Shown here in pieces: positions 28,177 to 58,085 of a stretch of DNA of 64,000 nucleotides (position 1 is its first letter; every line of letters begins with the position of its first letter). Origin of the DNA: Parasitella parasitica NRRL 2501 (taxonomy: Eukaryota; Fungi; Mucoromycota). The stretch covers positions 73,174 to 137,173 of the forward strand of contig MU619325.1 of the NCBI GenBank assembly GCA_025201805.1. The letters run 5' to 3'. A program made the position numbers and the translations under genes. The notes under the pieces are model-generated. The model had not been told where the DNA came from. It was given only the letters and a program-made list of their open reading frames with translations, and searched no databases.

Positions 28177-29904
28177 ATGACTTTCAAAGACGGCATCTTC
28201 GCCACTCCCTTTACAAGCACTGATGATGATATTGATCCAACTACAGAGCAAGCCAAAGAAGTCTTGAGTCAACCACCTGCCACAAAATGGGAGTTGTGGA
28301 GCTACTATCTATACTACAATGGTGATAATGGTTATACCATGTTCAGTTACATGCCCAACATCCTTCAATATTTAGCATACAAAGGTGGGTTCTATCCCCA
28401 TACGCCTTCAGTCAAAGGATGCGACATTCACAACGTTGTCGATAATTGTTATGTACCTTGGTCTGGTACTAGTGGCATTCCAGTCTCTGCTATGATGCTT
28501 TATGTTCAAGCCATCTCATTTTCTATTCAATTCGTGCTATTTACAACTTTTGGTAGTCTGGCAGATTATGGCAAATGGAACAGATACATTCTATTCCTTG
28601 CAACTGTTGTTGGCTGTGCGACCCAAATCGTGCCTATTGCTTTTTTGAACGATGATGGCTCTAGCTGGAATGCTATGATGGGGATTATGATTCTAGCTTT
28701 GATTTCTTACGGTACATCTCTTGTATTTTATGCTGCTGCTTTCCCTACATTGAGGTATGGCGTATGTACAATGTATATACGGTGTTGCGTGAACTGACTC
28801 ATTCCTTCTTTCATTTGCGTACACAGTGACAACCTGCCGGTTGTACGTAATGCTCGCGCTGATACCAACTTATCAAAAGATCAAGCGGCTGATATTGCAG
28901 AGAGATGGAGAAACCATGTATCTGCTATTTCTACTGTATTCTCCAACATTGGATTTTTGATCATGACTGGCCTCTTGTCTGGCATCTCTTTTATTCCCTG
29001 GAGCAATTACGAATTTTATGAAGATGATTTACATGTGCTGGGCACTGTTCCCCTATTCAACTTTATTGCCACTGCAGTTTGCGGTGGCTTCTGGATGCTC
29101 AATGCTATACCATACTTTGTTGCGGTCCCATCAAAGAGACAAGGCCCTCCACTTCCACCAGACGCAAACCACTTTACCATTGGCTGGAAGTCAGTGTTCA
29201 ATGCGTTCAAAGAAGCTCGCAAGTTGCGCTACTTATTCCTGTACATATTTGCGTATTTCATGTTTTCTGATGCCGTGTCTACTACCAACCAGATGATTGC
29301 GATTACTCAGGCTCAAATTACAGGGTTCAACGCACAGCAAATAACCATACTCAACTTGGCCTCTGCTGTAACGTCAATCCTTGGATGTCTCTTCTTTCTG
29401 TGGCTCACCAAGCGCTTTGGTATTCGCACCAAGACCAATTTAATGATCATCATCTTGCTAACTGGCATCATTCCATTGTGGGGCTGCTTTGGCATTGGCC
29501 TTCAAAACTTTGGGATCCGCACAACTTGGGAGCTTTGGGTATTTTACGTATGGTCTGGTCTTTTCACTGCACCCATTTGGGCATGGCAAAACACCATGCT
29601 CGCCGAGCTTGTACCTAAAGGTAAAGAAAACTTGTTTTTTGGTCTTTTTGGTGTCATAAACAAAGCTTCATCTTGGATCGGTCCTGTTGTCATTGGTGCT
29701 ATCACCCAATACACTGACAATCTCTGGAAAGGTTGGCCATTTGTACTTGCTTTGTTTGTATTGTCATTAGTTATCATTTGGTTCATTGATGTTGACAAAG
29801 CCAAAATTCATAACTCGGAGTATTTGTTTGGACAAAGTGCACATGAGGATCATCAAAATGGTAATGAGCATGTCCTGGTGCCTGATGAGAAGACTTCGCT
29901 TTAA
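28177..29904 (+). CDS. ATG22: Atg22-like vacuolar amino-acid efflux transporter (MFS)
   Basis: ELWSYYLYYNGDNG, FGSLADYG, YAAAFPTL/SDNLP, AELVPKGKENLFFGLFGVINKASSWIGP; one intron at about 28755-28826. Confidence 0.85.
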
Positions 29905-30106: not shown

Positions 30107-32364
30107 TTAAATCAAAAGCTTTTCAATGTTAGCAACAATCTCTTGAGATTCTTTGACGTAGTCAATGGGCTTGAGTTCAATACAATTGTATTTGATACGA
30201 GTGATGTCCTATGTAAACACAATGAGTACGGCTTGAAGATAATACACAACCTACTAAAACGCTTACATTAAATGTTTCTTGCTTTGCTCGAATCTTGAAG
30301 TTGAATGTTTGAAAGAGAGCTCTGTTAAAGGCTACCTGGGCCGCAGCAGCGTCACTCTCCTTCAATGCCATAATCTCGTTTGCACTCATCTTTAATAATG
30401 TGTTACCCGGTTCATCAAATGCATTACAATAAATCTGGGAGGTAGCATCTTCAACACTCATTGTCAAGATGTATCTGTAGTCTGGGGAGCCAAAGGTCTT
30501 TTGACACTTTTCGCAACGCCAGCCATTAGATTCCAGTATCATTTTCTTTTTACATTCAGGACAAGCAGGATAAGCGCAAGACTCAGACTTGATGTAGACG
30601 ACGGTACCTCTGAATTCAAAGTAGTCTGCCTTATTTCCCATTCCTAGGTTTTCGGATTTGGCTTCTTGTAAAGTAATCTTGTTACGTTTAGTAATACCAT
30701 CACCAGCAGCGCCAGCCATGCCAGAGTAACTATTGAAATTCGCACTAGTTCCCTTTTCAGTATACCACTGTTTGAGATGATTAGCTTCGGGTGTGTTGGG
30801 GTTAATCTTGAATGTGGAAGCAGCGCCCAAGGACAATGAGCGACCGTTATAATCATTGACACGAACGCCTTTGCAAGCAATGATAGGTGTACCAGTGGCG
30901 TCAAATTGTTCAGCTTGAGCACCCCATAAGGTAATACGGATTGTCTTGAGAGACTCGTCAGCCAGGGTCAATTCTCTTTTTTTCATCTATTGAAACCATT
31001 AGCAGAAGTTTAGAGGATAGCAGGGTCCATACTTACGGGTTTTCCAGAAGCCTTTGAAACAATTTCAGAAATACCGGCATCTTCAGTAACAACGCCAAGA
31101 ACATCTAATACAAGTTTTTCAGCCTTGCGATCCACTCCACACCACGCACGTCAGCCAACTTACCACAGTTACTATCCTTTTCACAATTATCAATGTCAGC
31201 AATTTTTACAAAGCAATATTTGACTTGAGGGATGTCAGCAGCCTCACCACACTATTTGCAAAGAAATTTAGTGCATGGCCACTATCAAATGAGACTCACA
31301 CAAAAAGAAAAAGAAAAAAGAAACTTACAGCTTGAATTTCTGTTCCACTCTGAAGTAACAGCTCGTACTCATTATTCAGGGTAGAGAATTGCTTTTTAGC
31401 CATGGTAACTTGTGCCTTGGAAATGTAATAAACTTGACCTTCCTCGAGCAAATTGTAGAATTTGTCGACTTGTTCAGTAAAAGCAGTTGCTTTGATTTCA
31501 CCAGTAGAATCCAAAAGATTCACACTAAACAACTGGCCATCACTCTTTGAGTTGTGCCATTTTCTGATTTCTGACTTTTGAGTAACACGAGCTTTGATAT
31601 GCCATCTAGCAACAATGATTGGTATCTCGAATTTAGATTTGTTTGAAACGGACGACTTACCTGGTCTGATATGGATTCAAGTTGCTGATGCCCGTAGCAC
31701 TAGCATCGAGGGCTCTTGTAGCGGCATTATGAGAAGAATAGGTCGAGTTGTAGTCATTTCTAGATTCTGGCTTGGGCTCTTGTTTGTAAGGGGACGAAGC
31801 TGATGCAGATGACGGGCTATTTGTGTTGGAAGGATTTGAAGAAGAGCTACTGCCCTCCAAAGAAACAGGCATGCCAATCTTGGATTCTACATCGACTTGA
31901 ACAACTTCGAAATTCAAAAGAATCAAGATCCTAATTCCAATACCCTTTAATATATGCCATCAGCTGAAAAATGAGCGCTTCCCTTACTTTCTGCTTTGAA
32001 GAGCGTTGCAAACAAATTCTTTAAGTGTGATGATGCTATGGCGTTTAATTTGCTCTTGGTCAACCAAGTGCGAATGTTGCTGAGCAAGCATAGCTATCAT
32101 GCTTGGATTAGTCGAATGTAAGAAAGTTCATCTCTCCGACTTACCCTGCATAAAGTTGACACCGTCAGAAATGATGACTCTACCACAAGTTCTCGTTATG
32201 ATACTTTACTGCGCAAGCCAGTGTTTTATCTTTTACCTGTGACGGATACCACCATTTACAGTAACAGCCTTGATGTTGATGATTTGGACTGTAGGATTAT
32301 TGTGCAAAGGATTTCCCTTTTGCTCGTCGTAAAGAACTTTGACAGCACCTGTAGTGAGAGACAT
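30107..32364 (-). CDS. RFA1: Replication protein A 70-kDa subunit
   Basis: MSLTTGAV.., VIISDGVNFMQ, ISNLNPYQT/RWHIKARVTQKSEIRKWHN..GQLFSVNLLDSTGEIKATAF, zinc ribbon YPACPECKKK..WRCEKC, KIRAKQETFN. Confidence 0.95.
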
Positions 32365-32410
32365 TCTTTTGAAGTTTGCGTAAAAGAAAGAGATGCAGCA
32401 GTAGCCTTAA

Positions 32411-32472
32411 ACGCGATGCACTTTTTTTTTTTTTTTTTTTTCAATTCAATGATCGCGCCAGTCGACGCGCGC
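32411..32472. promoter_or_regulatory. Cluster of CGCG-core G1/S elements (MCB-like ACGCG and E2F-like TGGCGCGA) upstream of RFA1
   Basis: ACGCGA at 32411, TCGCGCCA at 32453, ACGCGCGC at 32465, all within about 110 bp of the RFA1 ATG in CpG-poor DNA. Confidence 0.5.
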
Positions 32473-34677: not shown

Positions 34678-36439
<1,762 letters not shown>

Positions 36440-37653
36440 TGATTTCAAAAGTTTTCGTTCAAGAGAAATCGCTTTACTCATAAAATCGCTTTACTCATAA
36501 CTTTGAACGCATATAAATATATATAAAGACCTTATCACTATAATCAACCATATACATTTTTGTACACTATTTTGTAATACATCGTTTATATAGCTTGGCC
36601 ACTCACATCTAGTACATTTTTCATGCCAACTGCTTTTCTTGAATTAAAGATAGAGAGTTTTCATACGAATATCTTCAAAGCTTACATTTAAGAAAACGAA
36701 CTCTTATCAAAGTAGTAAAATAAGATAAAAGATGATAAAGTGCGAGAGAATAATCAAATAATGAAATGTGTGTACAAAAAGAGGTAAGGGTAAATGACAA
36801 TCAAATGCAAGCATGTATCATTTATATTCGAATGCAATTGTTCATTGTGAATTGCATCAATAGTAAAATGTGGAATCTAGTCTTGGAAAATATTTCCCGA
36901 AGCAAAATATAGTGATAATTATAAACCATTAGAACTTCTCTAGAAAGTGGAGTATCTCCTGTTCTTTGGCCAATAAAATGTTTTTTGATGTGAGAAAAAC
37001 GTTTTAGCTTTATTGTCTCATTTTATAATAAAATGTGTATCAGGATTGTTTATCCCACACAAACTAAGAGATACTGTTGGTAAACGTGCATTTATAATAT
37101 CATAGAACCGGAAACGCTCGTGGATTTTGGTGCTACAAACCTTCATTGAGGCCTCCCCCTTATTTTTCTCTCTGAACAATGCGCCTGATCCTGTTTTGTC
37201 GTTTGCAACAAATTTTATCTAGAAATCTATTCCAATGATACACTAGAGAAAAAAGATTATTGATCTGGTGCAATACGACATACAAATGTTGTCAGACCTC
37301 CTTCATGTTATGTGCATAAGTCATTAAACTATGTTTCTTATGGTTTACCCTTAATAATGCTTTCCCCTGCAAGGGATCTCAAAGTTACAGACAATCAACC
37401 AGCAGCTGAATACTACTAGCATGGCATAAACATTACGCAAAGAGGCGAACTCGGGATCATGGTTGCTTGGAGGCAGCTGTAAATGTCACATTGGGTAAAG
37501 CAAGTCAACTAGAGTTAAATCTCGGTGGTGGTGTGTCCCTTTCTCTCCCTATTAAAGAATGTTGATTTACAAATATAGAACACTTTTGTTAACCTTTTTC
37601 TTTTTTTATTTTTTTTTAACATCAACTTTGAAAACGAAACTTTTGTTTACAAC

Positions 37654-40600
37654 ATGTTTTTTGTTGAAGCAGCAACAGCATCGGCAAGCAATTCTAACCT
37701 CCAGTCGGTTAGCGACTTTTGGTTATTTGTTGTGTATTGCCTAGTAGTCATTGTTGTAGTCATTTTCTTTTTATTTTATTTCAATCGTGTGCTCGGCCAA
37801 GTACTTACATTCATTATCAATCAATACACATGGAGAAGATACAATGCTTATATTGAAGTTGGTACGTTGCAAGTAATGGCCTTTCCACTAATCATGACTA
37901 AAAAAAATCATACGTAGACTCTATCCGTGTGTCGTTGCTAGGCGGCCGAATATTGTTCAAAAACCTTAGATACCTATCGACAAATCAATCAATATCAATT
38001 GTCAAAGGACACATTGCAGTACGATATTGGCTTTTGAACATTCGAAAAGCAGAAGATGACAAAAACGGTATGCCTCGCTGATTCGTAATGCTGGGCAATT
38101 GATGAACTTTTTTTACATAGGTATAACCAACAATTTGCCATGTCGAGTCGTCTGCAGCGTTGAAGGCCTTGAGTGCTTCCTTTACAACAACACAATTGCC
38201 TATGATCGAATGAGAGATATACTAGGACTATCGACTACGGAAACGCACAACACATCCAGCTCAACCAACATCGAAAAGAGATTAACTGATGTTCGCGGAA
38301 CACTTGATCCCGAAAGCCAAACCCCGACCAATATAGACAACTCACTATTAGAAAGATTAATGCCAATCCAATTCGAGTGTACAACGGGCGCAGTGATGAT
38401 TGGCAATACCGAAATAAAATCAATGATTGTCTGTAAAGTGTCACAAGCGAATGGCATCTGCAGCCTAACGAAATCAAGATCGCCAATGGATTACTACAAA
38501 TCAGTAGTGGATTTCATACTGAGGAAACCGCAGATCAGCTTTAAAGATAATATGGATTATACAAATGTACAGGAGACAACCGAACAAGTTATAAAGCCAC
38601 TACTGAGAAACAGCTTTGCGGCATGGTTGCTGAAGCCATTTAGATGCTTGTACCCATTTGCAATGACGAGACAGTACGGCAAAATGCAACATATGCGAGA
38701 CATCATGAGAGATGGGAGGTCGCATAGACGAAACGATAGTGATGATACCACTTATCATGAGGAATATGCTAGAGTTTCAAACATAGTCGAGTGCAATGAA
38801 ATGGCTTTGACTTACTATGCTGATTATGCGGGTAATTCATAGGTTTTGTTGATGCGTTGAATGTGTAACTCAAGTGATTCCCTTTTTTTTTTTTTTTTTT
38901 TTTTTAGGACCTGTACCAACACCCGAAGCTTCTGATTCTTTCCCAGGAGTTGGGACTGATATTGGTAACGGTGGATTGCCGCCAGAGTGGGGTGTCCGTG
39001 TCTCATTATGGGACGCTACCATCCACTATGGCGCCTGGGCAGATAGACAAAGATCAGAAATGCAGGACTACTTCTTACCCAATTCACATCGTGAAATCAC
39101 ACCTACGCAAAAGCTTTTACCAGGGCAGCAGAGAGTTGCAACATCATTTGAAACGTATATCGAGTTTGTAAATGACGGCAAAGTACGAGTGCCCACACGA
39201 GAGAAATCCAAGGTATGTAGCACAAGCGTTTCCTGCATTCAAAATTACCGTATATGTGTACCGACAGATTTCCTTTTATAGGATTGGAAATATAATAATC
39301 CAGAGTCATCCGATCTAGACGTTGGATCTGATGACTACTATTCCAGGCCATATGGCTGGTTTAATATCAAAGCCGGAAAAGGGTCTTTCATTAAAGTAGT
39401 GACACCATTCGCGGTAGGGGAGAATGGCCACGCCAATAAAATTGACATTGTGCTGAAGGATATAGACATCACCACCAGCGTGAACTATGCTTCATTCATT
39501 AAGGTGGAGCGAGTTGAGTTCAACATCAATATGCCAGCACCACTGCAGTGGAATGGATTTAGACAATGGGATTTTAAAGTGGTAGCAAAGAACCCGGTAG
39601 TGTTCTTACTGAGAGACCACGTCTTTCTATTGCAAGATACCGTCAAAGACTGGACTGGTGCCGCTCAACCTTCGGATTTATTGCATTTCACTCCAATGGT
39701 CTACCAATTACAGTTCAACTTGAAAAACCCTAAAGTGTATCTCTGTGTGAATGAGCACAATGTTATCAATAATCCCAATTCAATCGACGATAATGGTAGG
39801 TTAGCTAATACGTCGATTATAAATCGTCACTGACATTTGCTCTGTATAGCTTTCCTCAAAATCGAAGCTCATCGCATAGGGTTCAACATTAAGCTGCCAT
39901 TCACAGAATTCCAACCCGAAACTACAGCCATCAAGTTTTTTGTTGAGGCAGAGCATGGCAGTGCAGGCCTATCTTTACAAACATCACACACGCTCAACGC
40001 TTTTATGAGAGACGACGATTCGCATGCTGCTGTGGCAGTCAATCTGACAATTGATGGATCTTACGAATTCTACAGCTCGGTAGACATCTTGCGACATATC
40101 GAAACCTGCAATCTTAATGTGAAAATCAACGGCGCCACTGTCAAGGTTTTTGGCACTTTGATTCGATACCTATTTCTATTGAAAGAAAACTACTTTGGTG
40201 CCTGGAACAATTTTTCCACCATTGTGGAGTACAGAAATCTGAAACGAAACCAGCAAGAATGGCTGGAGCAGAAGAAGAGGCAAGCTGAAGCAAAACCCCC
40301 TGCTGATCCGTTTGAAGTTTATCTCTTGCTGGAGCTGGAGGACGGCGTGCTCTTGTTTCCTGAAAACTTGTATGAATGCTCCAGATACTCCCAGTTTGAA
40401 TTTCAAGAGCTGCAGTTGGAGCTGAGGAATCTGGATGTCTATCTCGACATGTACCTCAACATCAGTCCTATCACTCTAAGCAGAGACAGCAATCCAAACC
40501 CTCAATCAAAGGAAGGCTTTTTCCGAATCAAAAATGCCCGAGATCCAAAAAACTATGTGTATATAGACGGTAACTATGACATTGCGTTAACATTGCAACC

Positions 40601-43600
40601 ATAACATGTAGTCCTAATTAATTCTATTCAGGGGTAAATGTGTACGGCCATCGTCTATTCGGGCCACTTCCCGACTGCTCTACCTATCTCTGTCAGTGGG
40701 AATTCGATATTGGTCGCATCACGGGCGAGATCAAGCCTTCATTCTTGTTGGGATTATCCTGCTTTGGGCAATCGTTTGCCTATAATTTGATCGACGAAGA
40801 CAATGCTGTGCCTCAAGAGTTGACGTCCAAGGATTTACCTGACGTTACTTTTATCAAATTGTATGTCCAAGAAGTGGATGTCTGTCTGATGAGTATGAAC
40901 AGTGCGACAAACATCGCCATTCAAGACGGCATTCTGCTTGAGTTTGACAACTTGATCAATGTCAAGTACAGCCAAAGAATCACCCTTAAAATACCTTCCA
41001 TCTTGGCCCGTTGTTTGGCGAACCCGGATCAGGCTCGAGGCGACTCTTCCGCAGAGGACAATGAATACTCTTGGGTAGAGGTTGCCAAAGCAGACCTAGG
41101 CCTCAATGTCTCCATATTCAGACACACCGCAGAGTGGGAAAAGGCGCGCAATGAGCAGCAAACTTTCATCCGTACACAGGATTACGCTACGCGCCGATGT
41201 GTACGTTTATACGAGGAAGTGGATACAGCGTCTCAGAGTAAGTTTTATGAAAAAAAAAAAAAAAAAAAGTTGCATGTACCAGGCAGTTGTCGTAACGCTT
41301 GTATGTTTGATAGTATCTCGATCCTCCATGCGGTCTTCAACCGAGCATTATGTAGGCATGGTGTACGCCCCTCCATTCCGGCCTTTTATGTTTGGCCGTG
41401 TGGAAGACAAGTCTGTTCTCTATGACGATAGCTCATGTGCTTCAGGTGAGCCATCTCCAGGAAGTGTGAGAGGTGCAGGCTACAGCAGAAATGGCAGCAT
41501 TAATGGGCCTAGCGCTATGATGATGCCAGGCGGGTCTGACGACGATGATGCTGACGAGCAAGAAGTTGGATCTGATTTCGAATTTGATGAAGACATGTTT
41601 GATAATTACTCTATCCACACTGGAATTTCTGGAAAGGATAACGACTCTTTCCACACCGCCAAGAACTCTGCCGAAGACGATGAGGAAGACTCTTTCTCAA
41701 TGGCAGATGACTACTCCATACACTCACGAAACTTTGGCACTGGTTCATCAAGCGATGATGCTGAATATGATTGCACGTCCTCTTCAAATCAGAAAAATGA
41801 AGACAGCAGAAATAGACGACGAAAACCAGAAAAGGATCTCAAAGCAGCTATACCCCCATCTATTCCATACAGTGATTATCTCAGAAGATTCAAGATCCTG
41901 CGTTCAAACTCTGAACACGATTATGGAGGATTTTTCCATCCTTTTATGCCACCATCTCAGCCTCATTTTGTGCCTGAAAAGGCAGACCCTGGAAACTACT
42001 CAACCCCGTACCAAGCAGCAGAAAATACAGAGCCTCACGATTACTTTTCTACTACCGAAACAGCTGATCATACAAACCATATGAGCAGCAATATCGATAG
42101 CAAAGATGCATATGGGAAGGGTAACGAAGTAATTGCTACCACTGTGATTGAAGCAACAAGGTCTGTCACTATCCTTGTTACGCCAATCTTGGTCAAAGTC
42201 GCTCAGGAATTGGCGGAAGAAATTATCAAGGACGATTGGGATTTGGAGACCATGCTGGATGCTCTTCAGATGGAGTACATTGGACAACTGACTCGCTACT
42301 TGACCAATCAGTACATTTGCACCCGCTTTGCAGTCATCCTGCCCCAAACATACTTGCACTTTATCCAAAATGCAACCGTTCCAAACGACCTGCCTTCGTA
42401 CAAGCACGGCGAATCCTTTGTCAAAACACAATACAACCCAGACGACACAATCTTGTGCTCGGCAGACCTCTTTTTGAACGAGTTCAAGATGGTTGGAAGT
42501 GTCAGATTTGAGGACTTTGCGTTTGCTGAAAAGAAGAATAAGGTGGCCGAATCCAAGCTGGTGCTACAAGAATACCGAGTGCACATTGATGCTGGCGAGA
42601 TGGGAGCAACCGTGCAGTACGTTTCCAAGCAGTATGCAAGACAATCCATTGCGTTTGGCATTCCTTATGAATCTTTGCGCAACAAAAACCTCCACAACAA
42701 CATGGCCGACCAGGAAACCTTAGTAGACGAGCTCGTGATGCTTGATCTCGCTGTCAAGGGATTCAACTTTAAACTGCTCGGCGCAAGAGTGCCAAACTTT
42801 GCCGAACTAAGTGTAGATAGTGTGGATACCATCATCATTACGGAATCTGTCGAGATTTTGGTCGGTGCTGTGTATTCCTGGCTCGTGTTTGTGGATGATT
42901 TAAAGGGCATTCTGGAGAGCTTCCAAGACCAACGCACTAGCCAGGTACAGGTGTTTATCAACGAAATTGCAAACTACTCGATCAGTCAAGGTGTTGTGGG
43001 CGATCCTGTCTTTTTAAATACCCCCGCTACTATGCTCAGGTTGGGATCGCGCAACTTTAGAGACGATTGCGGCTGGAAATTACTAGCACGTATGCGGCAT
43101 TGCTTGAGGTCTATGCCCTCATCTAAACGCGAGGAACTGCAGTACCGATTAACATCAGGAGGCGCCCTACAGGGCATTGATTCAGAAGCCATCTATGAGA
43201 ATGTGGTAAATACATTTTCTCATTGGCGTAGCTGGGAAGTTGCCTATAGTGATATCACACGTTGCCGCCTGTTTACACAGCCCTTCAACAAGACTGTAGC
43301 TCAAGATGGAGGCGAATTTGCCCCCAAGGACATGACAGATGAAGTGGTTCGCTTCCTGATATCCTCTGCTAATTTTGCCAAGGCTAAACTCGGCGAATTC
43401 AAATTTACCATTTACGAGGAAGAAACGTCTGAATCCAGTAAAGAGGAGAACAGCATATCCATCCGATCCTTAACATTTCTTCTTGAATGTCTGTTTAAAG
43501 CATCTTCTATTGCCTCTGCGCCAGAACACAGTCAAGCCAGGAATGAAAATCGAAAAACACTGGCTGTGCCAGATGGTTACCTTGATGTGGTTACAAAAGT

Positions 43601-46600
43601 GAGTTTGGGCGAAATCGACATATCTACAAATCCCATTATTTTGGCCTTTGCTAGACACATGCTTTTGGTGCAAAAGGTATTTACAGCCAAACTGCTTAAC
43701 TTGTCGCATGCAAACAGGACGTCTGCGGCCGCTGCCGCCAACAGCTCCAAATCTGCTGGTGCTGTCGCAGCTTCTTCATCCGCAGTAGCCAAAAACAAGG
43801 ACTTTAATTTTGATACTCTTCTTGGCAAGCTGGATATTGTAGCACAAGCATTACTCAGCCTGGACAAAATCCAAGTGATTGCGCATGCACAAGAATTGAG
43901 AATGGACACTACTGTGTCTGGCGTTATAGCATCTGGCCTATTCTCAAATCCCAAGCTGGCACCTCTACAGTTGTCTATGCCGACTGAACGCAATTCAGAT
44001 ACGGGATCAGGCATACGAAGCTCCAACCGCGGCCGTAAAAACAACCATGCTGATCCCCGTTTAGTCCTTGAAGCTACAAGTGGCATCAATTCAATCGACA
44101 TCAAGTTTAGGGAAGAAATTAAACACAGCAGCAGTTCTGGGTCTATTCGAAGCAACGTACTACTTGGCATCATGCTTGAGAGGGCCAATGTCAACGCCAA
44201 CATCACGCAGGTCCCCAGAATGTCAAGAAAGAATCCCCGAACAGAGATCACCAAGGATACTTTGAACATATTTTCCAACATCCACAAGTTCCATGTGCAC
44301 GTACCTCAGAGTCTTTTGCGTCTTTACGGGTTCGTGGAATCCTGGCAAACAGAGCAAGGCAGAAGGTACCATTTTATGTTTCAAAACCTGGTCAAGGAGT
44401 GGGAAGAGCAGCGAAGAGTGCAAGTTGCTGGCAGCACATCGACCGCCGCAGAAATGTCTAATGCTGCGCCTTTTGCCCTCACTGCACCTGCAACTACACG
44501 CCCCGTAGCACGACCAAAGAAGTTGAAGATGGATATCAAGCTCCAGTTCCTGCTGAACGAGTTTCTGATACAAGCTGATCTTTTGCCGTCTCTTAGCTTT
44601 GAGTATAGGATTTTGGATTTCTTTATCATGGTCAACGAAACACGACCAAAATCAGGGCTTGTTCTCAAGTATGATTTCCAGTTGTCAAAGCAGGTCGTTC
44701 ATCTCATAACAAAAGAGGACCGGAAGCACAAGCACAGCAATAGTTCCAGCACTTTTAGCATACCAGGAATCCGCAGCATAGGAACAATCAAGAATGAAAT
44801 GCACAGGGGAGCTCCTCAGCTGAAGCTCAAATCCAAGATTTCTATTGACATTATATCCTTGTCTCTCAATGCAAGCCTTATAGATTCGCTACTGACTGCC
44901 CAATCACTCGTCGGCAATGAAGTCAACGAGCTTGTTGAAGTCTTGTCGTATTCCAAGAACAAGAACTCTTCTAGAGGACCTTTAGAGAAAGTTCCTGAGG
45001 CCGGACCATCGTCGCCCGATCGAGTGTTTAAATACACCATTGATGTCTCGTTGGATGGCCTTCAAGTGTCTGCATCTAGTCCTTCTGCTTTCGGCATGTT
45101 CAGGTCTAATCTGTTGGAGGCCTCGATTTCGAATGACTGCATGAAAGGAGGAGATGCCGCTGACAAGCTTGGCTGGAAATTGCAAGCTCAAAACTTCTCG
45201 CTGTCTCTTGTTCACAATACGGTACAGGACATTGACGAGACGTTCATCGACAAAGAGGATAGTGTCTACCAAAGAAACTGCCTAGCATACATTTTGGTAG
45301 ACTTTAGCGTGCAAAACTACCTACCCACTTGCACAGCCGCAAACTGTCAAAAGGGCACGCATGCTCATGCTTGCGACACCAACAAGCAAATGGGCGCTAT
45401 TTTCATTGATTTCGCTCGCATCCAAACCGTCATGCAGCCAATTGCGCTAGGAAAATTAGCGGAAATGTACATTTATTATGATGCAGAACTTGGGAAAAAA
45501 AAGTTGATGAAGAAGGCTGAAATCGACCAACTCTCAGCAAACACAAAACGCATCGTTCAGTCTATTTCCAACAAGAATGAGTGGCCGAAATCCTTGCAAG
45601 AAGAGCCTCAGTCGTTGCTGGAAGGTAAAATCATATGTCTGCACGTCCGCCGTTTGGGCGTCGCTATTCCCCTGAAGTCTCAATCTGATCTGCCATTATC
45701 ATGCTCATCTGCTGCCGAGAGCTCAAGAGGTGTTAGTGCGCTTTTGTTGTCTGTTGTATCTATCGAGTTCATGACCAAAAATGCCGAGAAGGGTTCTCTA
45801 CAGTTGGACAATCTTGTTTTACAGTTTGTAAAGCGGTTTGACCAAAACAGGGCAGAGCATTTCCTTTCAGAGAACCATCCTCGCATGAACCACGTCAGTT
45901 TGCCCTCTATATCGTGCCACGTATCCGCTTCCAAGGTGAAGCCACTGCAATCGGTTATAATTGATGCGCATGTAAAGGGGTTTGAAGTAGACGTCGACGG
46001 CACTATTGCTGATTACATCAACACGCTCAGCAACATCTATGTCAAGTCCAAAGATCGAGTAGACGCATTCACTGCAAAAGCAAACTTCAACCAATCGAAA
46101 ACCCCTACTTTGCCTGAAGTCGAATCTCCAAGCACGTCTGAAGTCATCCATTTGGATCTTGAGTGCAGATTCCAGTGCGACAGTGGCACGATTCGCATGT
46201 ATCCTAAGCGGCACTCTAGCGACGCACACCGTAACAAGAAAAAGTCAAAGTCCATGCGTATTCGTTCGTTTTACGACCGCAAACCAAACGAAGGAAACAT
46301 GGCTATGGTCGAGCTTCCTGGGCTGAGTGCCTGGCTAATGTACCAGACGCCTCTTGGCGCCCATGCAAAAGTAATCGATGCTCCAAAGCGATTCCACGCC
46401 GATATTCTGATCCGTGAAAGCGTCAATACCCTACACCCTGCACTAGTTCAGTTCCTGATAGAGGTGGTGGCAGGCCTCAAGCTGGGCATACAGCAGTCGA
46501 GCGAGAGAAAGGCAGTGAGACCAGTCGATTCCGAGAATGAGTCTAATTTGAATGCCTCGCTGTTCTTGCGTCTCTCAAAGACCCAACTGGATCTTAGTTG

Positions 46601-48647
46601 CCAGCCCTCGTGCAAAGTAATGTGCTCCATGGGCTGGGAGGAAAGCGAATTCATGGTGAATGCGTTCTCTAAAGACACAACATCCCGTACGATCAGCTGT
46701 GTAGGCTCTGTCAGAGAAATCACTACTGTGGTCAAGCATAACTTTTCTCCAGAAGCTTGCTTGACGGCTCGCGTTGATCGCATCTTGTTCAATGTTATGC
46801 TTACATCGCAAAGAGAAGGCGGGAAACTGAAAGACGACATATCTGTCATTATAGATCTGCCAAATGTGCTGGGCGACCTCAACATGCGGCATTTGCAAGA
46901 CCTTCTTATGCTTTATACCTGCTGGTTTGTGCAACCCATCGACCGTGCTCCCAAGTCCTCCAAGTCTCCAGCAGCAGCAGCAGCAGCAGCAGCAGATGTG
47001 CAGTTTATCGATAAGCACAGATCTCAAGCATCGACATCAGACAACGACGATTCATCCATGGAAGAAGCACCGGCACCATTTTCAAAGCATGTTGCAGTTG
47101 GCATAAAAGATATGAAATTCTCTGTTGATCTTGGTCAGAACATTGGAATAATCACCTTGATACCAAGTACGCTATCATTCCAACTTCACCATATACCTCA
47201 TGAGACAAAGGGGCTCAGCTTAATACTGGAAAAAATCAAGGTTTTATCCGAAGGACGATTAGTAGGTAAAGCTATATTCCTTCAATCTGTTATCTATGGT
47301 CGTGTGGATCAATCCATAAACAATGGGCAAGCCAAAGAAAACGCAGCTGTTTGTGTACGCTCTGAAGGTTTTACTGCAGCCTTCGAGTACGAGTACCAGA
47401 ATATCTTGGATGCATCACAGCAATGTCTGGAACTAAATGTCAATTTCCTCAGAAACGCAAACAGATATGATCTGCAAGTCTCCATCAATTTGGATGCTTT
47501 GATAGCCAGACTGTCGATAAAGACTGTGCCTGTAATCATTACAATGATGCAGAAGTTTGATGAGCTCCTGAAGAAGAAGAAATCAGAGGCTGGCATGGGG
47601 CCGGATTACTACGATACCGAGATGCCAAAGACGATGGTTATTGCACGGAACCACTTGCTGTCAGAAGAAGAAGAAAGACAGAACGATCTGTATGAAAATT
47701 CGTCTGTACAAAGTCGAGTCATTCTCTGCATCAAGGCTGTTGAGTTTATCATTTATCCCAGTCAATTTCAAGATTCGGATAATGTGGATGTCCGAGCAAA
47801 ACAATTCAAAGTCGACTTGCAAGAGTTGCCACGCACTGCAGAAGGTATCCATAGAAAAGTGGTCATCACTCTTTTCAGTGCTGCATTGGCAAAGAATGTG
47901 CCCAGCATTGAACTCATGGACCGCTACAGCCGACCATTGCCTCCTCCTGGATCAAAAGTCAGAAACCTAGGCGGAACCAAGATCTTTGGTATCCCAGGTA
48001 CAGAAATCAGCATGGAGTCTACGCAATTGGATAGACACATCACGCATGAGTTTGCTGCAAACTTTGCTGGCCGTATTGGCGTTTCGCTAAATATTGGGTT
48101 AATCAAACACTTGCAAGAAATGATCAATATGTTCAACATGCAAGTCGAGCGTGCCTTTGTAAAGGACAAACCATATTTCTCGCCTTTACCAAGTCTTTCT
48201 GGTAGTTCCAACAACTTTGAAGAGCTTAATGAACTTATGGATAACAAGCGAAGAGAGCTACTGATATCGGGCTCGTCTAGCTCAACCACTCCTCCTCTCG
48301 CTCCTGCCCCAGCTACTTCTGCTCCTACCACATCTGCTGCTTCTTTGCAAGCAGAGGGAATCGAAAAGAAAGAAGAGCCACCAAAGAAGGAGGAGCCACC
48401 AAAGAAGGAGGAATTGCCGAAAAAAGAGGAAGAAAAGAGCGCTCCAGTTGAGAAATATACCTATACATCTGTTAACTCTGTCAATTTCCAGCCTCAACTG
48501 CAAGTTATGGGCGAGGCTACTCCACCTGTTGAATGGCTTGGCTTGAAGAGAGAGCGCATTCCAGGATTAGTTCATGAAAATATTACGCTGCATTTAGATC
48601 AAATGACCAAGGTTATTTGGCGTTTCCTGGAATCTCAAGCTGATTAG
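37654..48647 (+). CDS. CSF1: Csf1 / BLTP1 (KIAA1109/Tweek) bridge-like lipid transfer protein, over 3000 aa
   Basis: N-terminal TM plus FFLFYFNR.LG, SLLGGRILFKNLRY, LTYYADYAG, IHYGAWADRQR, LLRDHVFLLQD, YGHRLFGPLP; C-terminal FQPQLQVMGEATPPVEWLGLKRERIPGLVH. The final exon is about 7.3 kb; ORF 41106-48647 includes an intron near 41238-41312. Confidence 0.92.
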
Positions 48648-48844
48648 TTTCATAGATACACAGAAAATCGTTCTCTTTTATTTAATAAACATGTCCTTTT
48701 TGAATCATTTAAAAATTGTTCCTTGACTCAAATCAACTATTTACTGGCCGGATGTTCAATTTGAGGTGCAAGACAAATTGGCTTTTGATCAAGATATTGA
48801 TAAAAGTTGCACTTTTTCTTTCAAAAAAACAAAAAGAAAAAATT

Positions 48845-51800
48845 ATGCTGCCACGTACAGGCCTGCTAATCATTGGTGTGATCTTTCACATTGTATACTT
48901 GTTTAGTATCTTTGACATATACTTTACTTCGCCACTTGTGCATGGCATGAAACCACACAAAAGTCCAGTAGACCCTCCTGCTGATAGACTTGTATTGATT
49001 GTAGGCAGGTAGCGAGTAATTCGAGATTTTACAGCAAAAAAAAACTAACTTCTTTATAGGGGATGGATTAAGAGCTGATAAACTATTCGAATTGGACGCA
49101 AACCAACAAACCAGAGCACCTTTTTTCAGAAACATAATAGAGAGCAAAGGCACCTGGGGTGTTTCTCATACGCGTGTGCCTACAGAATCCAGACCAGGAC
49201 ATGTCGCAATCATTGCTGGTTTCTATGAGGATGTCAGTGCTGTCACCACTGGTAAATCTGCTTCGAAGCGTCTGCCCTGAAAATACCGCCTCTAACTTTG
49301 TCATCATAGGTTGGTCAATGAACCCCGTTAATTTCGATTCAGTCTTCAATCAATCACATCATACTTGGTCTTTTGGGTCGCCGGATATTCTGCCAATGTT
49401 TCAGCAAGGCGCCAGTGATCCTAGCAGAATCGAAACGTTCATGTATCCTGCAGAGTATGAAGATTTCACGGGAGGTTAGTCTGGTTGCATTTGAGGATCG
49501 TAATAGACATTCATGGTTCTACTGTAGAGGGTTCCAAGTTGGATGTATGGGTGTTTGATCATGTAAAGGAGCTTTTCGAAAAGGCAGAAGTTGATAAAGC
49601 ATTAAATGAAAAATTGCGCCAAAAGAAGATTGTCTTCTTTTTGCATTTACTCGGACTGGACACGAATGGCCATGGATTCAGACCAATGTCCAAAGAGTAC
49701 TTGGACAATATCAAATTGGTAGATCGAGGCGTCAAAGAGACGGTTCAGCTGATTGAAGATTTCTACGAGAACGACGGCAAGACAAGCTATGTATTTACAG
49801 CTGATCATGGAATGAATAACAGAGGCGGCCATGGCGATGGACATCCTGACAATACTCGCACTCCTATCATAGCCTGGGGTGCCGGTGTGCGCAAACCTAT
49901 CAAATCACACCTTGGACACGATGAATTTTCAGCGCCATGGGGATTAAATCACATTCAACGTGATGATATTCAACAAGCTGATATTGCGCCTCTGATGGCA
50001 CATTTGATTGGTATTGATTTCCCAGTAAATTCAGTGGGTGAACTCCCATTGAGCTATTTGGATGCTGATGAAAAGACTAAAGCTGAAGCTGCTTTCTCCA
50101 ACGCTCGTCAGATTCTAGAACAGTATCAAGTAAAGCATAGTAAGTTTTTTTTTTTTTGGCTTGTTAATGATTTCGGCTTCTTACACTGTATATATCAGAT
50201 CAAAAGGAGGAGCTTGAGCTCTTCTTTAGACCATTCTCTCAATTATCAGGAAGAAATGACCCCGATGTGCTTGTTATTGAGATTCAAGCTTTGATCAATG
50301 GCCACCAATACATTTTAGCAGAGAGAAAGTCAAGAGAGCTCATGACTCACTGTCTTGAGGGCTTACGCTATTTCCAAACTTACGACTGGCTCTTCTTGAG
50401 AAGTGTGGTAACTGCTGGCTACATTGGATGGTGCATATTCTGTCTTGAGTTTGTGGTTCGCAACTTTGTCCTTCGTTCGCAATCTCAGCTGTCTTTGTCG
50501 ATCAAATCTTGCCTCACAGTAAGTACAGATATTTTGCCCATTGCAGATACTTATAGGCTTTGCCAGATTGATTTCTTCTCGTTGGTGATCCTCGGTGGCC
50601 TATATTCCATGCTGTGGATTCAGAAAATGCCCAAGTTGTACTATGCCTACGTGCTATTCCCTGTGTATTTCTGGAATCAGATTCTTCGTAACTATCGTTC
50701 ATTGTCTGGTGCGTTGCGACTTGGTATAAAGAATGGCCTTGTCAAATCTGCCACTGCTGTCATTGCAGCCTTACTATTTCTGGAAGCTTTGGTGTTTAGC
50801 TTTTTTCACCGTGAAATGTTAAGTGCCATATTTATTCTATTGTCTGCTTGGCCTTTGGTGATGCCGTCAAGAGTTCGATCTGAAAACAAATTCCTTCTTG
50901 CGAGTTGGGCTGTATCATGCATTTGCACTAGTGTCTTTACACTCTTGCCGGTTGAAAAAGGCCAGGACATCAATCTTGTGTAAGTCTTTCAGAGAGGCAA
51001 TCGAAAAAATAGAAACCAACAAGCTTTATAGTGTACTAGGAGGTATATTTGGCGTCTTGGCAGGTGTGTTTGCTCTACATAATCTCAAACAAAACCATCG
51101 CATTAGCAAGCTCCAAAGTGCTATCATTACCGTGCAGTTATTTGCAACAGTTGCTAGCATTTTTCTTGTTTGGTCTACTGCTTCAAGTCTTCAAAAACGT
51201 GAAGGGCTCCCTGCATTCAATCAGATAGCTAGTTGGGTTATCATTTGTAAGATGAGATGACTATTCAGGTCTTTATTTAATTATATAACTCACCTCTATT
51301 TTTCTTTTTTTTTCGCAGCCATTTCAAGTATTTCTCCATTTGTTTATCGTGGAAAGTCATCTGATGATTACTTGACAAGATTGCTAATCATCTGTTTTGC
51401 GTTTGCTCCTTTGATGACTTTACTCAGTATCTCATATGAACTACTGTTTTATGTCTTTTTCTGCACTACGGTCCTCATTTGGCTTGAAGTCGAACGTGCA
51501 TTATACAAGGGCACTCGCTCAGCTGCTAATCGACCACTCAAAGGTAGCGATGGTCGTGCTGTTCTGTTCTTTTTATTCTTTATCGATGTTGCTTTCTTCG
51601 GTACTGGCAATGTAGCTTCGATGAGTAGTTTCTCACTGGAGAGTGTCTACAGGTTCACAACTATCTTTAATCCTTTCCTGATGGGCGCCCTCCTGATCAT
51701 CAAGATCTTGATCCCCTTCTTTGTTGCTTCGTCTGTACTTGGTATACTCAGCTCCAGTGTCGATCTCCAGCCTTTTACTTTATTCTTGGCCGTCTTGAGT

Positions 51801-52013
51801 ATATCAGACATTCAAACTATCAATTTCTTTTTCCTTGTCACTGACTATGGAAGTTGGCTTGAGATTGGTTCTTCTATTAGCCATTTCTGTATAGCAGAAT
51901 TATTCATCATCTTTACAATGATCCTGTTTCTCTTGTCTAGACTCTTGGTTGGGCGCCTTGTCTTGCCAAAGCTCAACAAGATGATCAGTCAAATGAGACC
52001 TAAAAGTTTATAA
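48845..52013 (+). CDS. MCD4: GPI ethanolamine-phosphate transferase 1 (Mcd4/PIGN)
   Basis: [107 protein letters not shown]. Confidence 0.95.
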
Positions 52014-52505
52014 AATTATCGACTCTCTTATTATTCTTATTATTAAACTTTTACATGACAAGTAAATTATATCAATCTCTGAAAAACCTACACCAGCATG
52101 AAAAGAAATAATTTTACCAGATAGCGGCAGTGTTCTTCAAGTTCAATCGCGGTTTTAGAGTGGATTTGGTAATAAGTTATAGGAGCGAACGACGACTAGC
52201 CTCCCATTATAAGATATTGCCGCTGCAATATCATTTCATTTCAAATGGAAATAATGTGAAGTGTCGTACAATTGACGCACTTAAGAATTTGACAGGATAT
52301 GTATACTATTCTAATACCGTAGAAAACCTCTCTCTTGACGATCGAACGGTACCACTATAGCAAGATATTATGATTGTGATATCTAAAAATCTAAGAACAT
52401 GTTGGATCGCTAGACGCATGCCTAAGAAATCTGCAATGTCTAATGAGAGTAACGCTCTACTTGCCATGTTGAGGTATAATTCCATCAAGACCCTTGTTTG
52501 AGCAG

Positions 52506-52537
<32 letters not shown>

Positions 52538-52787: not shown

Positions 52788-53535
52788 AATGCCTGTGGGA
52801 AGCGTGATCTTATCAATGATGTCGGTGGAAACTAGTGGAGTCCCTGTTCTGAACCATTAATCACTGCTACTAAACATTGCAATCAATCTTTTTCTCTTCT
52901 TCACATTTTCATATCCATTTTTCATTTCATTTTCACTTACAAAAGAAACAGGAAGGTCCTTTGAACAGGATGAAAGCTTTTACCAATTCAGGTAATAAAA
53001 GAAATTCTCTTTCTCATCTTTGTATATAGAAGCTGGCTTGAGGACGCAGAGAAGTTGGAACCGTGTCAGCATTTATTTACTTTAGTATCTGTACAAAACG
53101 ACTCCTCGCGTTGAATTTGTTCATGATTTTGATCGCATCAGCGTCCTTCTCTGTATTGATAAAATTTTGCAGCATAGACTTATAGATTACATTGGTAGTA
53201 CCCGGGCCCATCTTGAAAGTGTCTGCGAATTCAAAATAGGTGTACGGCTCCTCCAACTTCTCTGCGTCCTCAAACCAGCTTCTATCTGCAAAATGAGAAA
53301 GAGAATTTCTTTTATTACCTGAGGTGGTACAAGCTTTCATCCTGTTCAAAGGACCTATCTGTTTCTTTTGTGAGTGCATTGAAAAATGGATATGAAAATG
53401 AAATTGAAAATGAAAATGTGAAGAAGAGAAAAAAGATCGGTTGCAATGGTTAGTGGCAGTGATTAATGGTTCGGAACAAGGACTCCATTAGTTTTCACAG
53501 ACATCATTGATCAGATCATGCTTTCCACAGGCATT
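52788..53535. repeat. Long inverted repeat (foldback): arms 52788-53059 and 53252-53535, spacer about 190 bp
   Basis: The left arm aatgcctgtgg..ggtcctttgaacaggatgaaagctt..gaggacgcagagaagttgga is the reverse complement of the right arm; roughly 85% identical by eye. Confidence 0.9.
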
Positions 53536-53738: not shown

Positions 53739-54580
53739 GGTTCCTGTTGATAGCTTTATAATTTTTGTGATTAATTCCTACGACGCCTCTTGGTGCACTG
53801 CAAATATATTTTACGACTTTGTCTAATAATGTAATTTAGGCCATCATGGCAATACCAAGATAGGGCAGATTTTATCGATTGTGAAGGTGCGAATCAATTA
53901 TTTGAGACGTCGCATCATCATCATCCCAAGTATGTTACTGGGTCAATATCAATAATAAATATATATCAAACTGAAATCAATAATACTGAATCTGTACTTC
54001 TATTATGTTCATCGTTGTTAGTGCTATCATACTGCACTATTGGTTATTTCAGATATGACGATCTAAGAGCATCTCCAATGGAGATCTGCTTTTTTGGAAG
54101 TGCTAATTTGATACGAAAATTTTAGAAATCAAGCGACATAATTCTCATAAATCATCATTTAAATGGTTGTTTTCGATGGATATTTTGATATAATATTTGT
54201 TCAAAATTAATTTGTGTAATATCTGAGATTATGTAATTGAGGTTTCTGGAATAATATGATATTGATTTATCAATAAAATATATAGAGTATTTATACTATT
54301 TGATATTCGGTTGAAATAATATGTTTTGGTTATTCGGTTATATATATTTGATATGGTTAAGAAGGGCCTTGATACCAGAAAGATAATGGTAACTACCCAC
54401 CGGCCTTGGTTCGCGGTTAGGGAATCATCTTGGAACACCTCGAGGGTTACCACCAACACAAATTTCAATATCGCTTTTTAAAAAATAACGGCCAAACTTG
54501 GCTTCCTGGCAATCTTATTTTAAGCTTTTGCTAAATATGGCACCCTGTTTACCTGGTCCGTTGGAGACCGTTTTTATTTA

Positions 54581-56266
54581 CACCTTTTGTAAAAATAAAT
54601 GGCACACACACCGGAAATTATGGCACACTTTTTTTTTTCGATTTGGCACACATTAATTTTTTTGATTGGCTCAGAAATTTTTATTAGTTTGGCACATAAT
54701 TCTTTTATTGATAGCACAAAATTTTTGGCACAAAGTGTGCCATATTCAAAGTGGAAGTTTATCAAAGCATACTTGCCATTTTAATTCAGAATATCGGCAA
54801 AAGCCCTGTAAATCACTGAAAAGAACACTGTTGCAAGCGTCGGTTATTCTTGAAGTAAGCGTTTCCTTATCCAAGAGTTTTTCTTTTTTCAGTTTACTTT
54901 TAACCACTGACCAAAACTGCTCGATTGGATTCAATTCAGGTGAATAGGGTGGGAGATAAACGCACCTGTAGCCGCGATTGATTATGTATCTTTGAATATC
55001 AAGATTTTTGTGGATGGGAACATTGTCCATGACAATGTAGAAGCCTTTAAATTGATCGTGTTTGTCTAACACATCAAGGGTACTGGCGATGAAATTAAAA
55101 TAATGACCAGTAACGGTGCCTACTGTCTTGATTGCAGAAGACCCGGAAGCTTTAGATGATGCTCCATGCAACTTTCGCTTTTTTGAAGCAGACTGGTACG
55201 GTCTTCTTACTTTCACATTGATTATACCGAGAGGTGATATGGCACCCAAAATGGTTGTCGTTTGTGCCCTCGTTACAGGTGTCTCAACTATGGCTCTCTC
55301 CCCTTTTCTTGACCAAGCCATTGTCCTCTTGAGATTGATATGGAAAGCCGCTTCATCAATGAAAATACAGTTGCTTTGGTAGTCCAAATCTGCTTTTGAC
55401 CAGTTGCTTACCCACTCGAATCTTTGTTGGATTTTCTCGATCGAATTTCTTTCAGCAGGGTAAAAATAAGCTTTTTTAAAGGACAACGCGCATTCATTAA
55501 CCATGAAGTTATGAACGGTTTTTTTACCAACTTTCAGACCCTCAAAATGACTAGTCAGACTATCTATGGCTTGATCGACCGTTGCTGAAGGGTTCTCACC
55601 AAACGTTTCCTAAAGATGCTTTTTGTGATCTTCGTTTAATATTGCCTTTCTACCTCGTCTCTCAGTCAATTATTCGCCTCTGCTATCATCATTTTTTCCC
55701 TCGAGTCTACCCACAACTACATCCTGATCGTCTTTAAGCCAATTGTAACCCGTTCTACGAGGGACGTTCATAACACTTGCCGCTTTTCCAGCAGTCAGTC
55801 CCTTCTCATAGACGTAGTAAAAAAACATATCCTTTACATCGTCTCCGCGATGTATTTTTTTGACGTTTGAACCGTTTGGATTACTGGGAGCTCTGTCGAG
55901 TTTTTTGACTTTTGCTTGTATTTTCTTTTCAGGTGGTTTCAGATCCAGGTGTGAATCATAAGTGGTTATATTATCTAAAGGATACGCCTCCTCATCCACT
56001 TCCATTTGCACGGGTTCTAAGCCATCTTCATCCATGGTATTTCCTCTGCCATCTTCGAAATAGACTTTGAAAGACATGTTTTTTAATTGTTGAATTAAAA
56101 GAAATGTGTGCCATAAAGAATTTCAAAAGTGTGCCATCATTAAATGTAGTTTGTGCCAACTTAATTTGTATTAGTGTGCCATACGTAATTCTCAATCGTG
56201 CCAAATCGAAAAAAAAAAGTGTGCCATAATTTTCGGTGTGTGTGCCATTTATTTTTACAAAAGGTG
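54581..56266 (-). mobile_element. Tc1/mariner (IS630-like DD34E) DNA transposon, 1686 bp
   Basis: 69-bp TIRs (54581-54649 and 56198-56266, one mismatch) flanked by TA at 54579-54580 and 56267-56268. Confidence 0.95.
54746..56077 (-). pseudogene. DD34E transposase broken by two in-frame stops
   Basis: ORFs 55670-56077 (HTH-like AGKAASVMNVPRRTGYNW) and 54746-55504 (IFIDEAAF, MDNVPIH, 34 aa, YSPELNPIEQFW) share one frame, joined by 55 codons; stops TAA at 55670-55672 and TAG at 55610-55612. Confidence 0.9.
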
Positions 56267-58085
56267 TAGTTGGAGGTATTTTGGGAAATTAGCACCTCCG
56301 TTGGAGATGCTCTAAGTTGTGGTAGTAGCCAATATTTGAAAGACATAAATAACCTGCATTTATATCTTTTATAATAAACCGTTCACTTTATATACTGCTC
56401 GGATTCAAACATACTATGATTGTAATCCATAGATTGATTCACGTATATTATACCTGAGTTTTGTAAAATGACTAGGTAGTTGGTAAGTTAGTTCGCTGTC
56501 CTGGTGCTTAAAAGGCACACATCACTGCTTATAGTCTTTTTATGGTTTCTGAAAAAAAAGTTCAAGTAAATAATAAAGGTCTTGGTGATTGTAATAATAA
56601 AACACTAGGGTTTCTGGTAACAAACTTTTTATTTCTGATATAAGCCAAGAAGTTCCTGAGAGAAGACAAATATCACTCTAAAAAGATTTCAAGTGGGGAT
56701 TTCCATATTTAATGAAAGACTAATTGCTTCGTATCATTCATAGTGAAATTACAAAGAGATTGTGTTGTGAAATGAGCTATCTACATCATATCTTTAAGTT
56801 CAAGGTAGTCTTTGAAAAAAGTTACGGTTGTCTATTGACAAACACCTATGATTCTGAGTGTAAGTGTGTCTGTTGACTTTGGATTTAAAACCTTTAAATG
56901 GATTCAGGAACGGGCAGCAAGGTTCATTTATGTATCCAGAAATTTTTTTATGAATGGGTGTGTCATCCTGGTGGCAGATTGTTTCCTTTTCTCTGGCACT
57001 TTCTTACACCTTCAGTTGATCTGCCGTCATCTAATGTAGAAGGTCTTATTTAAGCTGGGTTCTGTATATTCAGTTACAAAGCAGAACAGCTAGTCAAATC
57101 TGTGCCATCTTTTCCAAAATATTGGAATGGCCTGATTTTTTTTTTTTTTTTAGATGTTATCTTTGTCTATTACACTAAGAATTAAATTGCGGAGAACAGG
57201 TTCTTACATGACAATAACACCAGAAGAAATTGCTTTGCAATTCGTGCTCGAAATGGCTTTTTATATCTCTTTGTTACATCTTACTCATAAAGCTTCTGGA
57301 TGCGTTACTTCTTTGTGTGTCGATCCTTTGCTTTCACCTCACCTATTGGTTGTGCTGTTTGTTTGATCACCAATAACTTCTTTGTGGTTCCATTCATCTT
57401 TTACCTTATAGATCATCAGAGCTATATGAATGGTATTCCTCTCTCAGTATTCATGTTGCACAAAATAAGTGTATTGCATGGAGCAACAATAATGATTTCG
57501 GCTATGTCCACTGTGTCGAGCACAGATGAGGCATTGAAGAAAAAAAAAAAAAAATAGAAAGAATAAATCCAAGACTTTGCTTCTGCTTATGCTTCAACTC
57601 TGAAATGTGAAATGTACCAACTAAAAATATTTTGAAAATCAAAATCAAGACGCCATAGTATCTTCTGATCGTGTGTGGCATGAAGTACCGTCGCCCCCTT
57701 TTGTTTTTTCTTGCTTTGTGCGTACATTATTCATCTTTTCCCATGTGTACCTAATTCGCAATCAAGTTGGCCGTTGCTCCACCTACTCTTGATGCGCAAT
57801 ATAAAACAAAAAGGCTATTAATCAGCTAACTTTCAGCAAATGATGTCCAGGACAATGAATGAAAGTATATACCATGACTTTGTCTCAAAGAGACAAAAAT
57901 TCATTGTTCTCATACTATTAGTGATGATCATGACGCTATTGTGAACGATCTTTGTATTATTACACTGCTTTTTAGCTCTGCAGTTTTAGAATACAATAGG
58001 GTTTACTAAAATTGAAGATTGCGATCTTGTATAAATGCTCCCTTTCATAACTTCACATTGATGAAATATACCCTTTTATCATAAC

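Follow-up and report, generated by a model that had tools for sequence, protein, structure and literature searches.

The closest described system to the one considered here is that of Saccharomyces cerevisiae, where the bridge-like lipid transfer protein Csf1/BLTP1 is linked to the glycosylphosphatidylinositol (GPI) ethanolamine-phosphate transferase Mcd4/PIGN: Csf1-3HA co-immunoprecipitates with Mcd4-GFP, and csf1 mutants accumulate GPI precursors lacking ethanolamine-phosphate (Toulmay et al., 2022, J Cell Biol, PMC8757616). That Csf1/BLTP1 passes phosphatidylethanolamine directly to Mcd4/PIGN is a notion based for the most part on yeast genetics together with this single co-immunoprecipitation, and gene order in a distant fungal lineage could give it independent support. 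BLTP1 and PIGN are moreover both human disease genes, which adds interest. We describe here a 64,000-nucleotide stretch of the genome of Parasitella parasitica NRRL 2501 (contig MU619325.1, positions 73,174 to 137,173; this whole stretch is referred to as the window), in which genes of the same two families, CSF1 and MCD4/PIGN (PIGN in what follows), are immediate neighbours on the same strand. The link in yeast is biochemical, whereas that in the Mucorales is one of chromosomal adjacency alone, in one clade. The two genes are probably transcribed independently, and probably came to be adjacent a single time, remaining so mainly through the inertia of gene order.

Clusters of functionally related genes are known in fungi, GAL and DAL being examples, as are polycistronic mRNAs in some basidiomycetes. 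CSF1 and PIGN resemble the GAL and DAL type of cluster in that genes of one pathway stand side by side; they differ from such clusters, and from polycistronic transcripts, in being only two genes, with separate mRNAs and a variable orientation. The other useful comparison is with the conserved adjacent gene pairs of yeasts, for which the distance between the genes is the strongest predictor of retained adjacency, with essential or housekeeping status as another main predictor and interaction and co-expression as lesser ones (Poyatos & Hurst, 2007, Genome Biol, PMC2258174). CSF1 and PIGN are likewise immediate neighbours kept over long periods. However, the yeast work provides genome-wide statistics, while here a single pair is followed across 13 loci and set against a local background of about seven pairs.

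CSF1 occupies positions 37654-48647 of the window on the plus strand, and was delimited by colinear Pfam Csf1_N pieces and a Csf1_C match, by Mucor homologues, and by transcript contigs, which cover the gene. A number of short 5' exons lead into a single long last exon, which lies within the open reading frame (ORF) 41106-48647, and the frame is closed by a TAG at 48645-48647. Pfam searches were run exon by exon. Csf1_N is matched in order, from profile position 1 to about 1574, over seven ORF pieces (37654-37917, 38099-38842, 38874-39281, 39399-39833, 39837-40604, 40640-41425 and 41106-48647); as introns split the gene, no single piece reaches the 98 bits set as cut-off for the whole domain. 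Csf1_C is found on the long exon with 70.9 bits (Pfam cut-off 26). The closest matches are Mucor CSF1 proteins of 3348-3485 residues, with 72-76% identity, as fits a Mucor-like member of the Mucorales, full-length relatives in general being of 3100-3760 residues. On the CSF1 tree the window gene nests with Mucor CSF1, for which the UniRef name in M. circinelloides is 'Protein CSF1'. This is the sole Csf1_C locus in the 32.8-Mb, 450-contig genome, and the gene is thus single-copy. A 79-nt non-coding stretch 5' of the CSF1 start (window 37547-37619) is 80% identical to L001:9316-9393 of M. plumbeus and may be a CSF1 5' untranslated region or a promoter element; apart from it, the flanks of the window and of M. 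plumbeus do not align.

The PIGN coding sequence runs from 48845 to 52013, also on the plus strand, in eight exons that encode 923 residues. Its seven introns lie at approximately 49005-49059, 49251-49308, 49473-49525, 50140-50198, 50519-50566, 50980-51031 and 51247-51318; the first of them is GC..AG, after resolution of a 4-nt ambiguity in the transcript joint, and the other six are GT..AG introns of 48-72 nt. The PigN family (PF04987) is matched on three exons with 181.5, 42.8 and 210.5 bits, together giving a complete domain over profile positions 1-456 (cut-off 25.4). It is preceded by a domain of the Phosphodiest/Sulfatase/Metalloenzyme type, the exon 49485-50294 giving 26.8 bits for Phosphodiest (cut-off 23) and 24.3 bits for Metalloenzyme (cut-off 24.3), and judged by domain score PIGN is predicted to have an N-terminal alkaline-phosphatase-like catalytic domain. 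The M. plumbeus PIGN has the same length of 923 residues, and identity to it is 78-93% over the individual exons. Like CSF1, PIGN is single-copy, being the only PigN locus in the genome. The names given to the two genes in the initial annotation of this stretch are therefore both confirmed by Pfam.

The spacer between the CSF1 stop codon, which ends at 48647, and the PIGN ATG at 48845 is 197 bp long (48648-48844, plus strand) and has 27% G+C. It contains an AATAAA hexamer resembling a polyadenylation signal at 48684-48689, 37 nt past the stop. The initial annotation had these positions, the shared strand and the spacer length exactly right. Transcripts were taken from one public run (X1), in which 90% of the words sampled from the stretch are present and whose contigs were aligned with positions 46200-52100. 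Its contigs skip the seven short PIGN introns, and X1 is therefore a transcriptome assembly; it consists of assembled contigs only, whose depth is no measure of expression.

Contig 2 of X1 spans 47004-48707 and is followed by ten A's, which are non-templated, given that the genome reads TTTAAAAATT at this position. The 3' end of the CSF1 mRNA, with its poly(A) addition site, is thus at 48707, 60 nt past the stop and 18 nt past AATAAA. A separate spliced contig of 2796 nt, with seven splice joints, represents the PIGN mRNA; it begins at 48830, only 15 nt before the ATG, ends at 52022 and yields the 923-residue frame, so that the gene is both intact and transcribed. No X1 contig bridges the two genes, and the 122 bp from 48708 to 48829 have zero coverage in the depth bins and in the piece table. 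These 122 bp must, we infer, hold or overlap the PIGN core promoter. The dominant products of the locus are two monocistronic mRNAs, and a terminator and a promoter do fit in 197 bp. The remark in the initial annotation that there is very little room for both holds to the extent that the spacer is short; yet there is room enough, and of the 45 spacers between same-strand genes called in the 12 fetched Mucoromycota loci (median 638 bp), seven are of 197 bp or less. The tandem spacer is therefore short, yet not very unusual among the fetched loci. A scan of it for sigma-70 promoters and intrinsic terminators found nothing, this being a type of scan that does not apply to a eukaryote.

In order to follow the pair in other genomes, 13 CSF1 loci from the Mucorales and Umbelopsis were compared, namely the window and 12 others chosen across the CSF1 tree. 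CSF1 is followed by PIGN in tandem in the window (197 bp from stop to ATG), in Mucor plumbeus (473 bp), in Gilbertella persicaria (1518 bp), in Pilobolus umbonatus (119 bp) and at copy A of Backusella circina (435 bp). In Rhizopus microsporus the two genes are head-to-head, with their starts facing each other 393 bp apart, which is the arrangement that a single inversion of CSF1 would produce. Every one of the six genomes sampled from a core Mucorales clade thus has the two genes side by side, five of them with a shared strand, and CSF1 identities within this set go down to 53%. There is no PIGN within 10 kb of CSF1 in Phycomyces blakesleeanus, Lichtheimia hyalospora, Umbelopsis isabellina, Apophysomyces ossiformis and Radiomyces spectabilis, at copy 1 of Absidia repens and at copy B of Backusella. 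A tblastn search with the window ORFs against all loci found no uncalled PIGN hidden at those that lack the adjacency.

The six genomes with the adjacency form one clade on the CSF1 tree, with 100% support in the Shimodaira-Hasegawa-like approximate likelihood ratio test. All of the loci that lack it are outside this clade, save Backusella copy B, the fast-evolving sister of copy A. The minimum number of state changes on the tree is two: the adjacency is gained once at the root of the clade, and Backusella B loses its duplicate PIGN. This distribution fits one gain, and the pair is thus derived, rather than ancestral to the fungi or to the Mucorales. The adjacency is neither species-specific nor ancestral. 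The proposal that it is an ancestral pair does not survive the six CSF1 loci outside the clade at which the genes are apart, while the opposite concern, that the adjacency might be limited to this one species, is answered by its presence throughout the sampled core clade. The two genes are also unlinked in S. cerevisiae (YLR087C and YKL165C, on different chromosomes) and in human, where they map to 4q27 and 18q21. A scan of metagenome contigs, for which the final PIGN exon was used in aligned form, provided just two 1-kb contigs, too short to give any gene context.

CSF1 has been duplicated in the lineage of Backusella circina (loci L008 and L009). Copy B no longer has PIGN beside it, yet its gene call is an intact one of 3305 residues; its branch on the CSF1 tree is 0.70 long, against 0.27 for copy A, which kept PIGN, making copy B about 2.6 times faster. 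An ancient duplication as the origin of copy B would have made the absence of the adjacency outside the clade uninformative. It was rejected, since on the tree copy B is sister to copy A at 100% support. It is worth adding that Absidia and Chlamydoabsidia have two CSF1 paralogues each.

No cis-feature is kept across the loci with the pair, spacer length, spacer sequence and orientation all being variable. The spacers of the tandem pairs (119, 197, 435, 473 and 1518 bp) differ thirteen-fold in length, and those of the window and of M. plumbeus align poorly outside the coding ends, for which reason the idea that the spacer carries promoter or terminator elements under conservation was rejected.

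Comparison of the flanks gives the ancestral gene order in the clade as zf-MYND – (bL31) – CSF1→ – PIGN→ – mitochondrial PheRS→ – PHD→ – ←DDX23 – SBF→. Pilobolus retains Pet127, zf-MYND, CSF1, PIGN, PheRS, PHD and DDX23, and Backusella B retains zf-MYND, bL31, CSF1, PheRS, PHD and SBF, without PIGN and DDX23. In Gilbertella, SBF, DDX23 and PHD are inverted and stand upstream of CSF1-PIGN, while in Backusella A and Rhizopus the flanks are wholly different from the ancestral ones. The old neighbours are present in the genome of the window on another contig, C23, at 257102-272516 (loci L017-L019). The order there is bL31 (-) at 257102, Pet127 (+) and zf-MYND (-) to 260928, then a 3.9-kb gap, and then PheRS (+) from 264871, followed by PHD (+), DDX23 (-) and SBF (+). 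The C23 block is thus colinear and co-oriented with that of Pilobolus, and lacks exactly CSF1 and PIGN. The two genes may have moved out together, or the blocks on either side may have been joined up again around them; by either route the breakpoints lie outside CSF1-PIGN.

The 3.9-kb gap on C23 contains a decayed transposase with helix-turn-helix (HTH) and DDE_3 domains (L018:2720-3788), and a DDE_3 element is also found downstream of the pair in the window. Relocation mediated by a transposon was considered and rejected, as the two transposases share no DNA similarity; nor was any found between the flanks of the pair and the C23 gap, which gives no support for recombination between copies of an element. 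A C2H2 zinc-finger gene, found near CSF1-PIGN in M. plumbeus, Gilbertella and Rhizopus, was tried as a marker for the ancestral block and proved uninformative, its best match in the genome of the window being on a small separate contig, C202.

The persistence of CSF1-PIGN has to be judged against that of unrelated neighbours. Between other core-clade species and the genome of the window, Pet127–zf-MYND, PheRS–PHD, PHD–DDX23 and DDX23–SBF have all been kept, as has MitoCarrier–UVSSA from the flank of Backusella A (C9:61206 and 63051); the Gilbertella pairs TBCC–M36 and M36–SCAI are broken. About five of seven unrelated adjacent pairs are therefore kept at comparable depth, in a background of about seven pairs that come mostly from one block and are too few for a matched test. 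In addition, zf-MYND, bL31 and CSF1 have the same order and orientation in Absidia repens (L016:6687-8474) and in Backusella B (L009:6748-9745), and this arrangement, being common to both, spans the deepest split in the Mucorales and is older than CSF1–PIGN. The initial annotation proposed neighbours such as MET17 as a background, and held that conservation no better than that of unrelated pairs would tell against a functional pair. The first proves to be of no use for comparison, since MET17 adjoins CSF1 at no other locus, and on the second the outcome is largely unfavourable to the pair.

The reading that we consider probable is the following. The CSF1 mRNA is cleaved and polyadenylated about 60 nt past the stop, and transcription of PIGN begins within the next 120 nt or so. 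The two genes would have become neighbours once, in the ancestor of the core clade (Pilobolus, Backusella, Rhizopus, Choanephoraceae and Mucor), and would have remained so mainly through the ordinary inertia of gene order: there is little room for a break to fall between these two housekeeping genes, and unrelated neighbours in the region have fared much the same. That retention has been mostly neutral we infer from these comparisons, and a null model based on the distance between genes covers it. It is very improbable, by contrast, that a single long transcript of CSF1 and PIGN is the reason for the tight spacing, as the initial annotation had suggested in proposing read-through or dicistronic transcription. 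Polycistronic mRNAs have been described in some fungi, the spacers in the window and in Pilobolus are short, and the tandem orientation of five of the six pairs would permit it. Against this, the CSF1 contig ends in non-templated poly(A) downstream of its AATAAA and the PIGN contig starts afresh at 48830; with two separate mRNAs and no coverage between them, the dicistronic reading is not supported, with the proviso that assembled contigs drop rare isoforms and that minor read-through would escape X1. The Gilbertella spacer exceeds 1.5 kb, and the divergent genes of Rhizopus rule out co-transcription in that species. Fused gene models, of the Rosetta-stone kind, were looked for among the 63 CSF1 homologues gathered with the long CSF1 exon as query, and were rejected, since none of the 63 carries PF04987. 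As for a chance adjacency peculiar to this species and without evolutionary persistence, it has nothing more in its favour than the prior expectation that some interacting genes will be neighbours by chance; the synteny survey, with the adjacency in five other genera, refutes it, and its probability is negligible.

A more serious competitor is that the linkage is held by selection in the core Mucorales, for example through a shared chromatin context or co-expression, and that the genes move as a unit. We regard this as possible, though doubtful. Several observations favour it, and so weigh against simple inertia. The pair has been kept in every sampled core-clade genome, over the considerable CSF1 divergence noted above and despite turnover of the flanks, both of which have been replaced in the Mucor lineage, in Backusella A and in Rhizopus, and rearranged in Gilbertella, where the inversion involved PHD–DDX23–SBF. 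Breakpoints have thus fallen outside the pair repeatedly, and the C23 block is otherwise colinear and lacks these two genes precisely. A rough count gives about eight breaks at the flanks of the pair and one inside it, although this is an informal estimate and not a formal test, and falls short of significance when the shorter spacer is taken into account. The break within the spacer in Rhizopus ended as an inversion, with the genes still side by side and possibly sharing the 393-bp divergent promoter region. The Backusella CSF1 copy that kept PIGN is the slower of the two, and Csf1 and Mcd4 interact physically in yeast, as seen by co-immunoprecipitation (PMC8757616). As a whole, these observations are consistent with a degree of constraint on the pair. 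On the other hand, unrelated neighbour pairs are kept about as well, one of them more deeply; the genes are unlinked in the earlier-branching Mucorales and in Umbelopsis, and also in budding yeast and human; and neither spacer length nor spacer sequence nor gene orientation is conserved. The pair came to notice, furthermore, in a screen of many stretches of DNA, and chance alone should place a few interacting genes side by side in such a screen. That CSF1 and PIGN form a selectively maintained two-gene module in the core Mucorales, relocating, inverting and duplicating as one unit, can thus be put forward only tentatively, and separate transcription with retention by inertia is the reading that we prefer.

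Within the window, CSF1 and PIGN are flanked by a MET17-like gene on one side and by A+T-rich DNA with many transposons on the other. The upstream neighbour is a MET17-like Cys/Met pyridoxal phosphate (PLP) enzyme gene at 34732-36400 (plus strand, end approximate), recognised by Pfam Cys_Met_Meta_PP on two ORFs; no such gene stands beside CSF1 in any of the other 12 loci, and it is outside the conserved unit. Further upstream are an ATG22-like vacuolar effluxer (28177-29904, plus strand) and RPA1 (30177-32421, minus strand). RPA1 is the only flank gene of the window that recurs, being found upstream of CSF1 in M. plumbeus in the opposite orientation. The downstream neighbour is a Tc1/mariner-like DDE_3 transposon at 54579-56268 (minus strand; Pfam DDE_3 94 bits, with an HTH match), about 2.5 kb downstream of PIGN and likewise outside the conserved unit. 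It has 71-nt terminal inverted repeats (I3) that are 99% complementary, and the element looks young. Between PIGN and this transposon there is an A-run of about 30 at 52506-52536, and nested long inverted repeats at 52788-53535, with arms of 106 and 117 nt that are 83-89% complementary. These repeats form a palindromic element of about 750 bp, which may be of the foldback type or similar to a miniature inverted-repeat transposable element.

The linkage of CSF1 and PIGN is real and clade-wide, a genuine microsynteny of two genes whose yeast products interact, and as such it merits a brief mention to those who study BLTP1. The initial annotation saw in it independent genomic-context support for the Csf1–Mcd4 channelling model. 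What remains of this is a clade-wide linkage that has survived rearrangement of its flanks; against it stands the fact that the linkage is derived, involves no transcriptional coupling and is not clearly longer-lasting than that of unrelated neighbours. The adjacency is compatible with the channelling model and lends it weak support from genomic context, and should not be cited as strong support. The local background control used here, in which the old flanks are found colinear elsewhere in the same genome, is a clean illustration of how such a control can temper arguments from gene neighbourhood in eukaryotes. If the pair were indeed a selected module, it would be the first gene-order evidence that the lipid bridge and the GPI ethanolamine-phosphate transferase behave as a coupled pair outside yeast.

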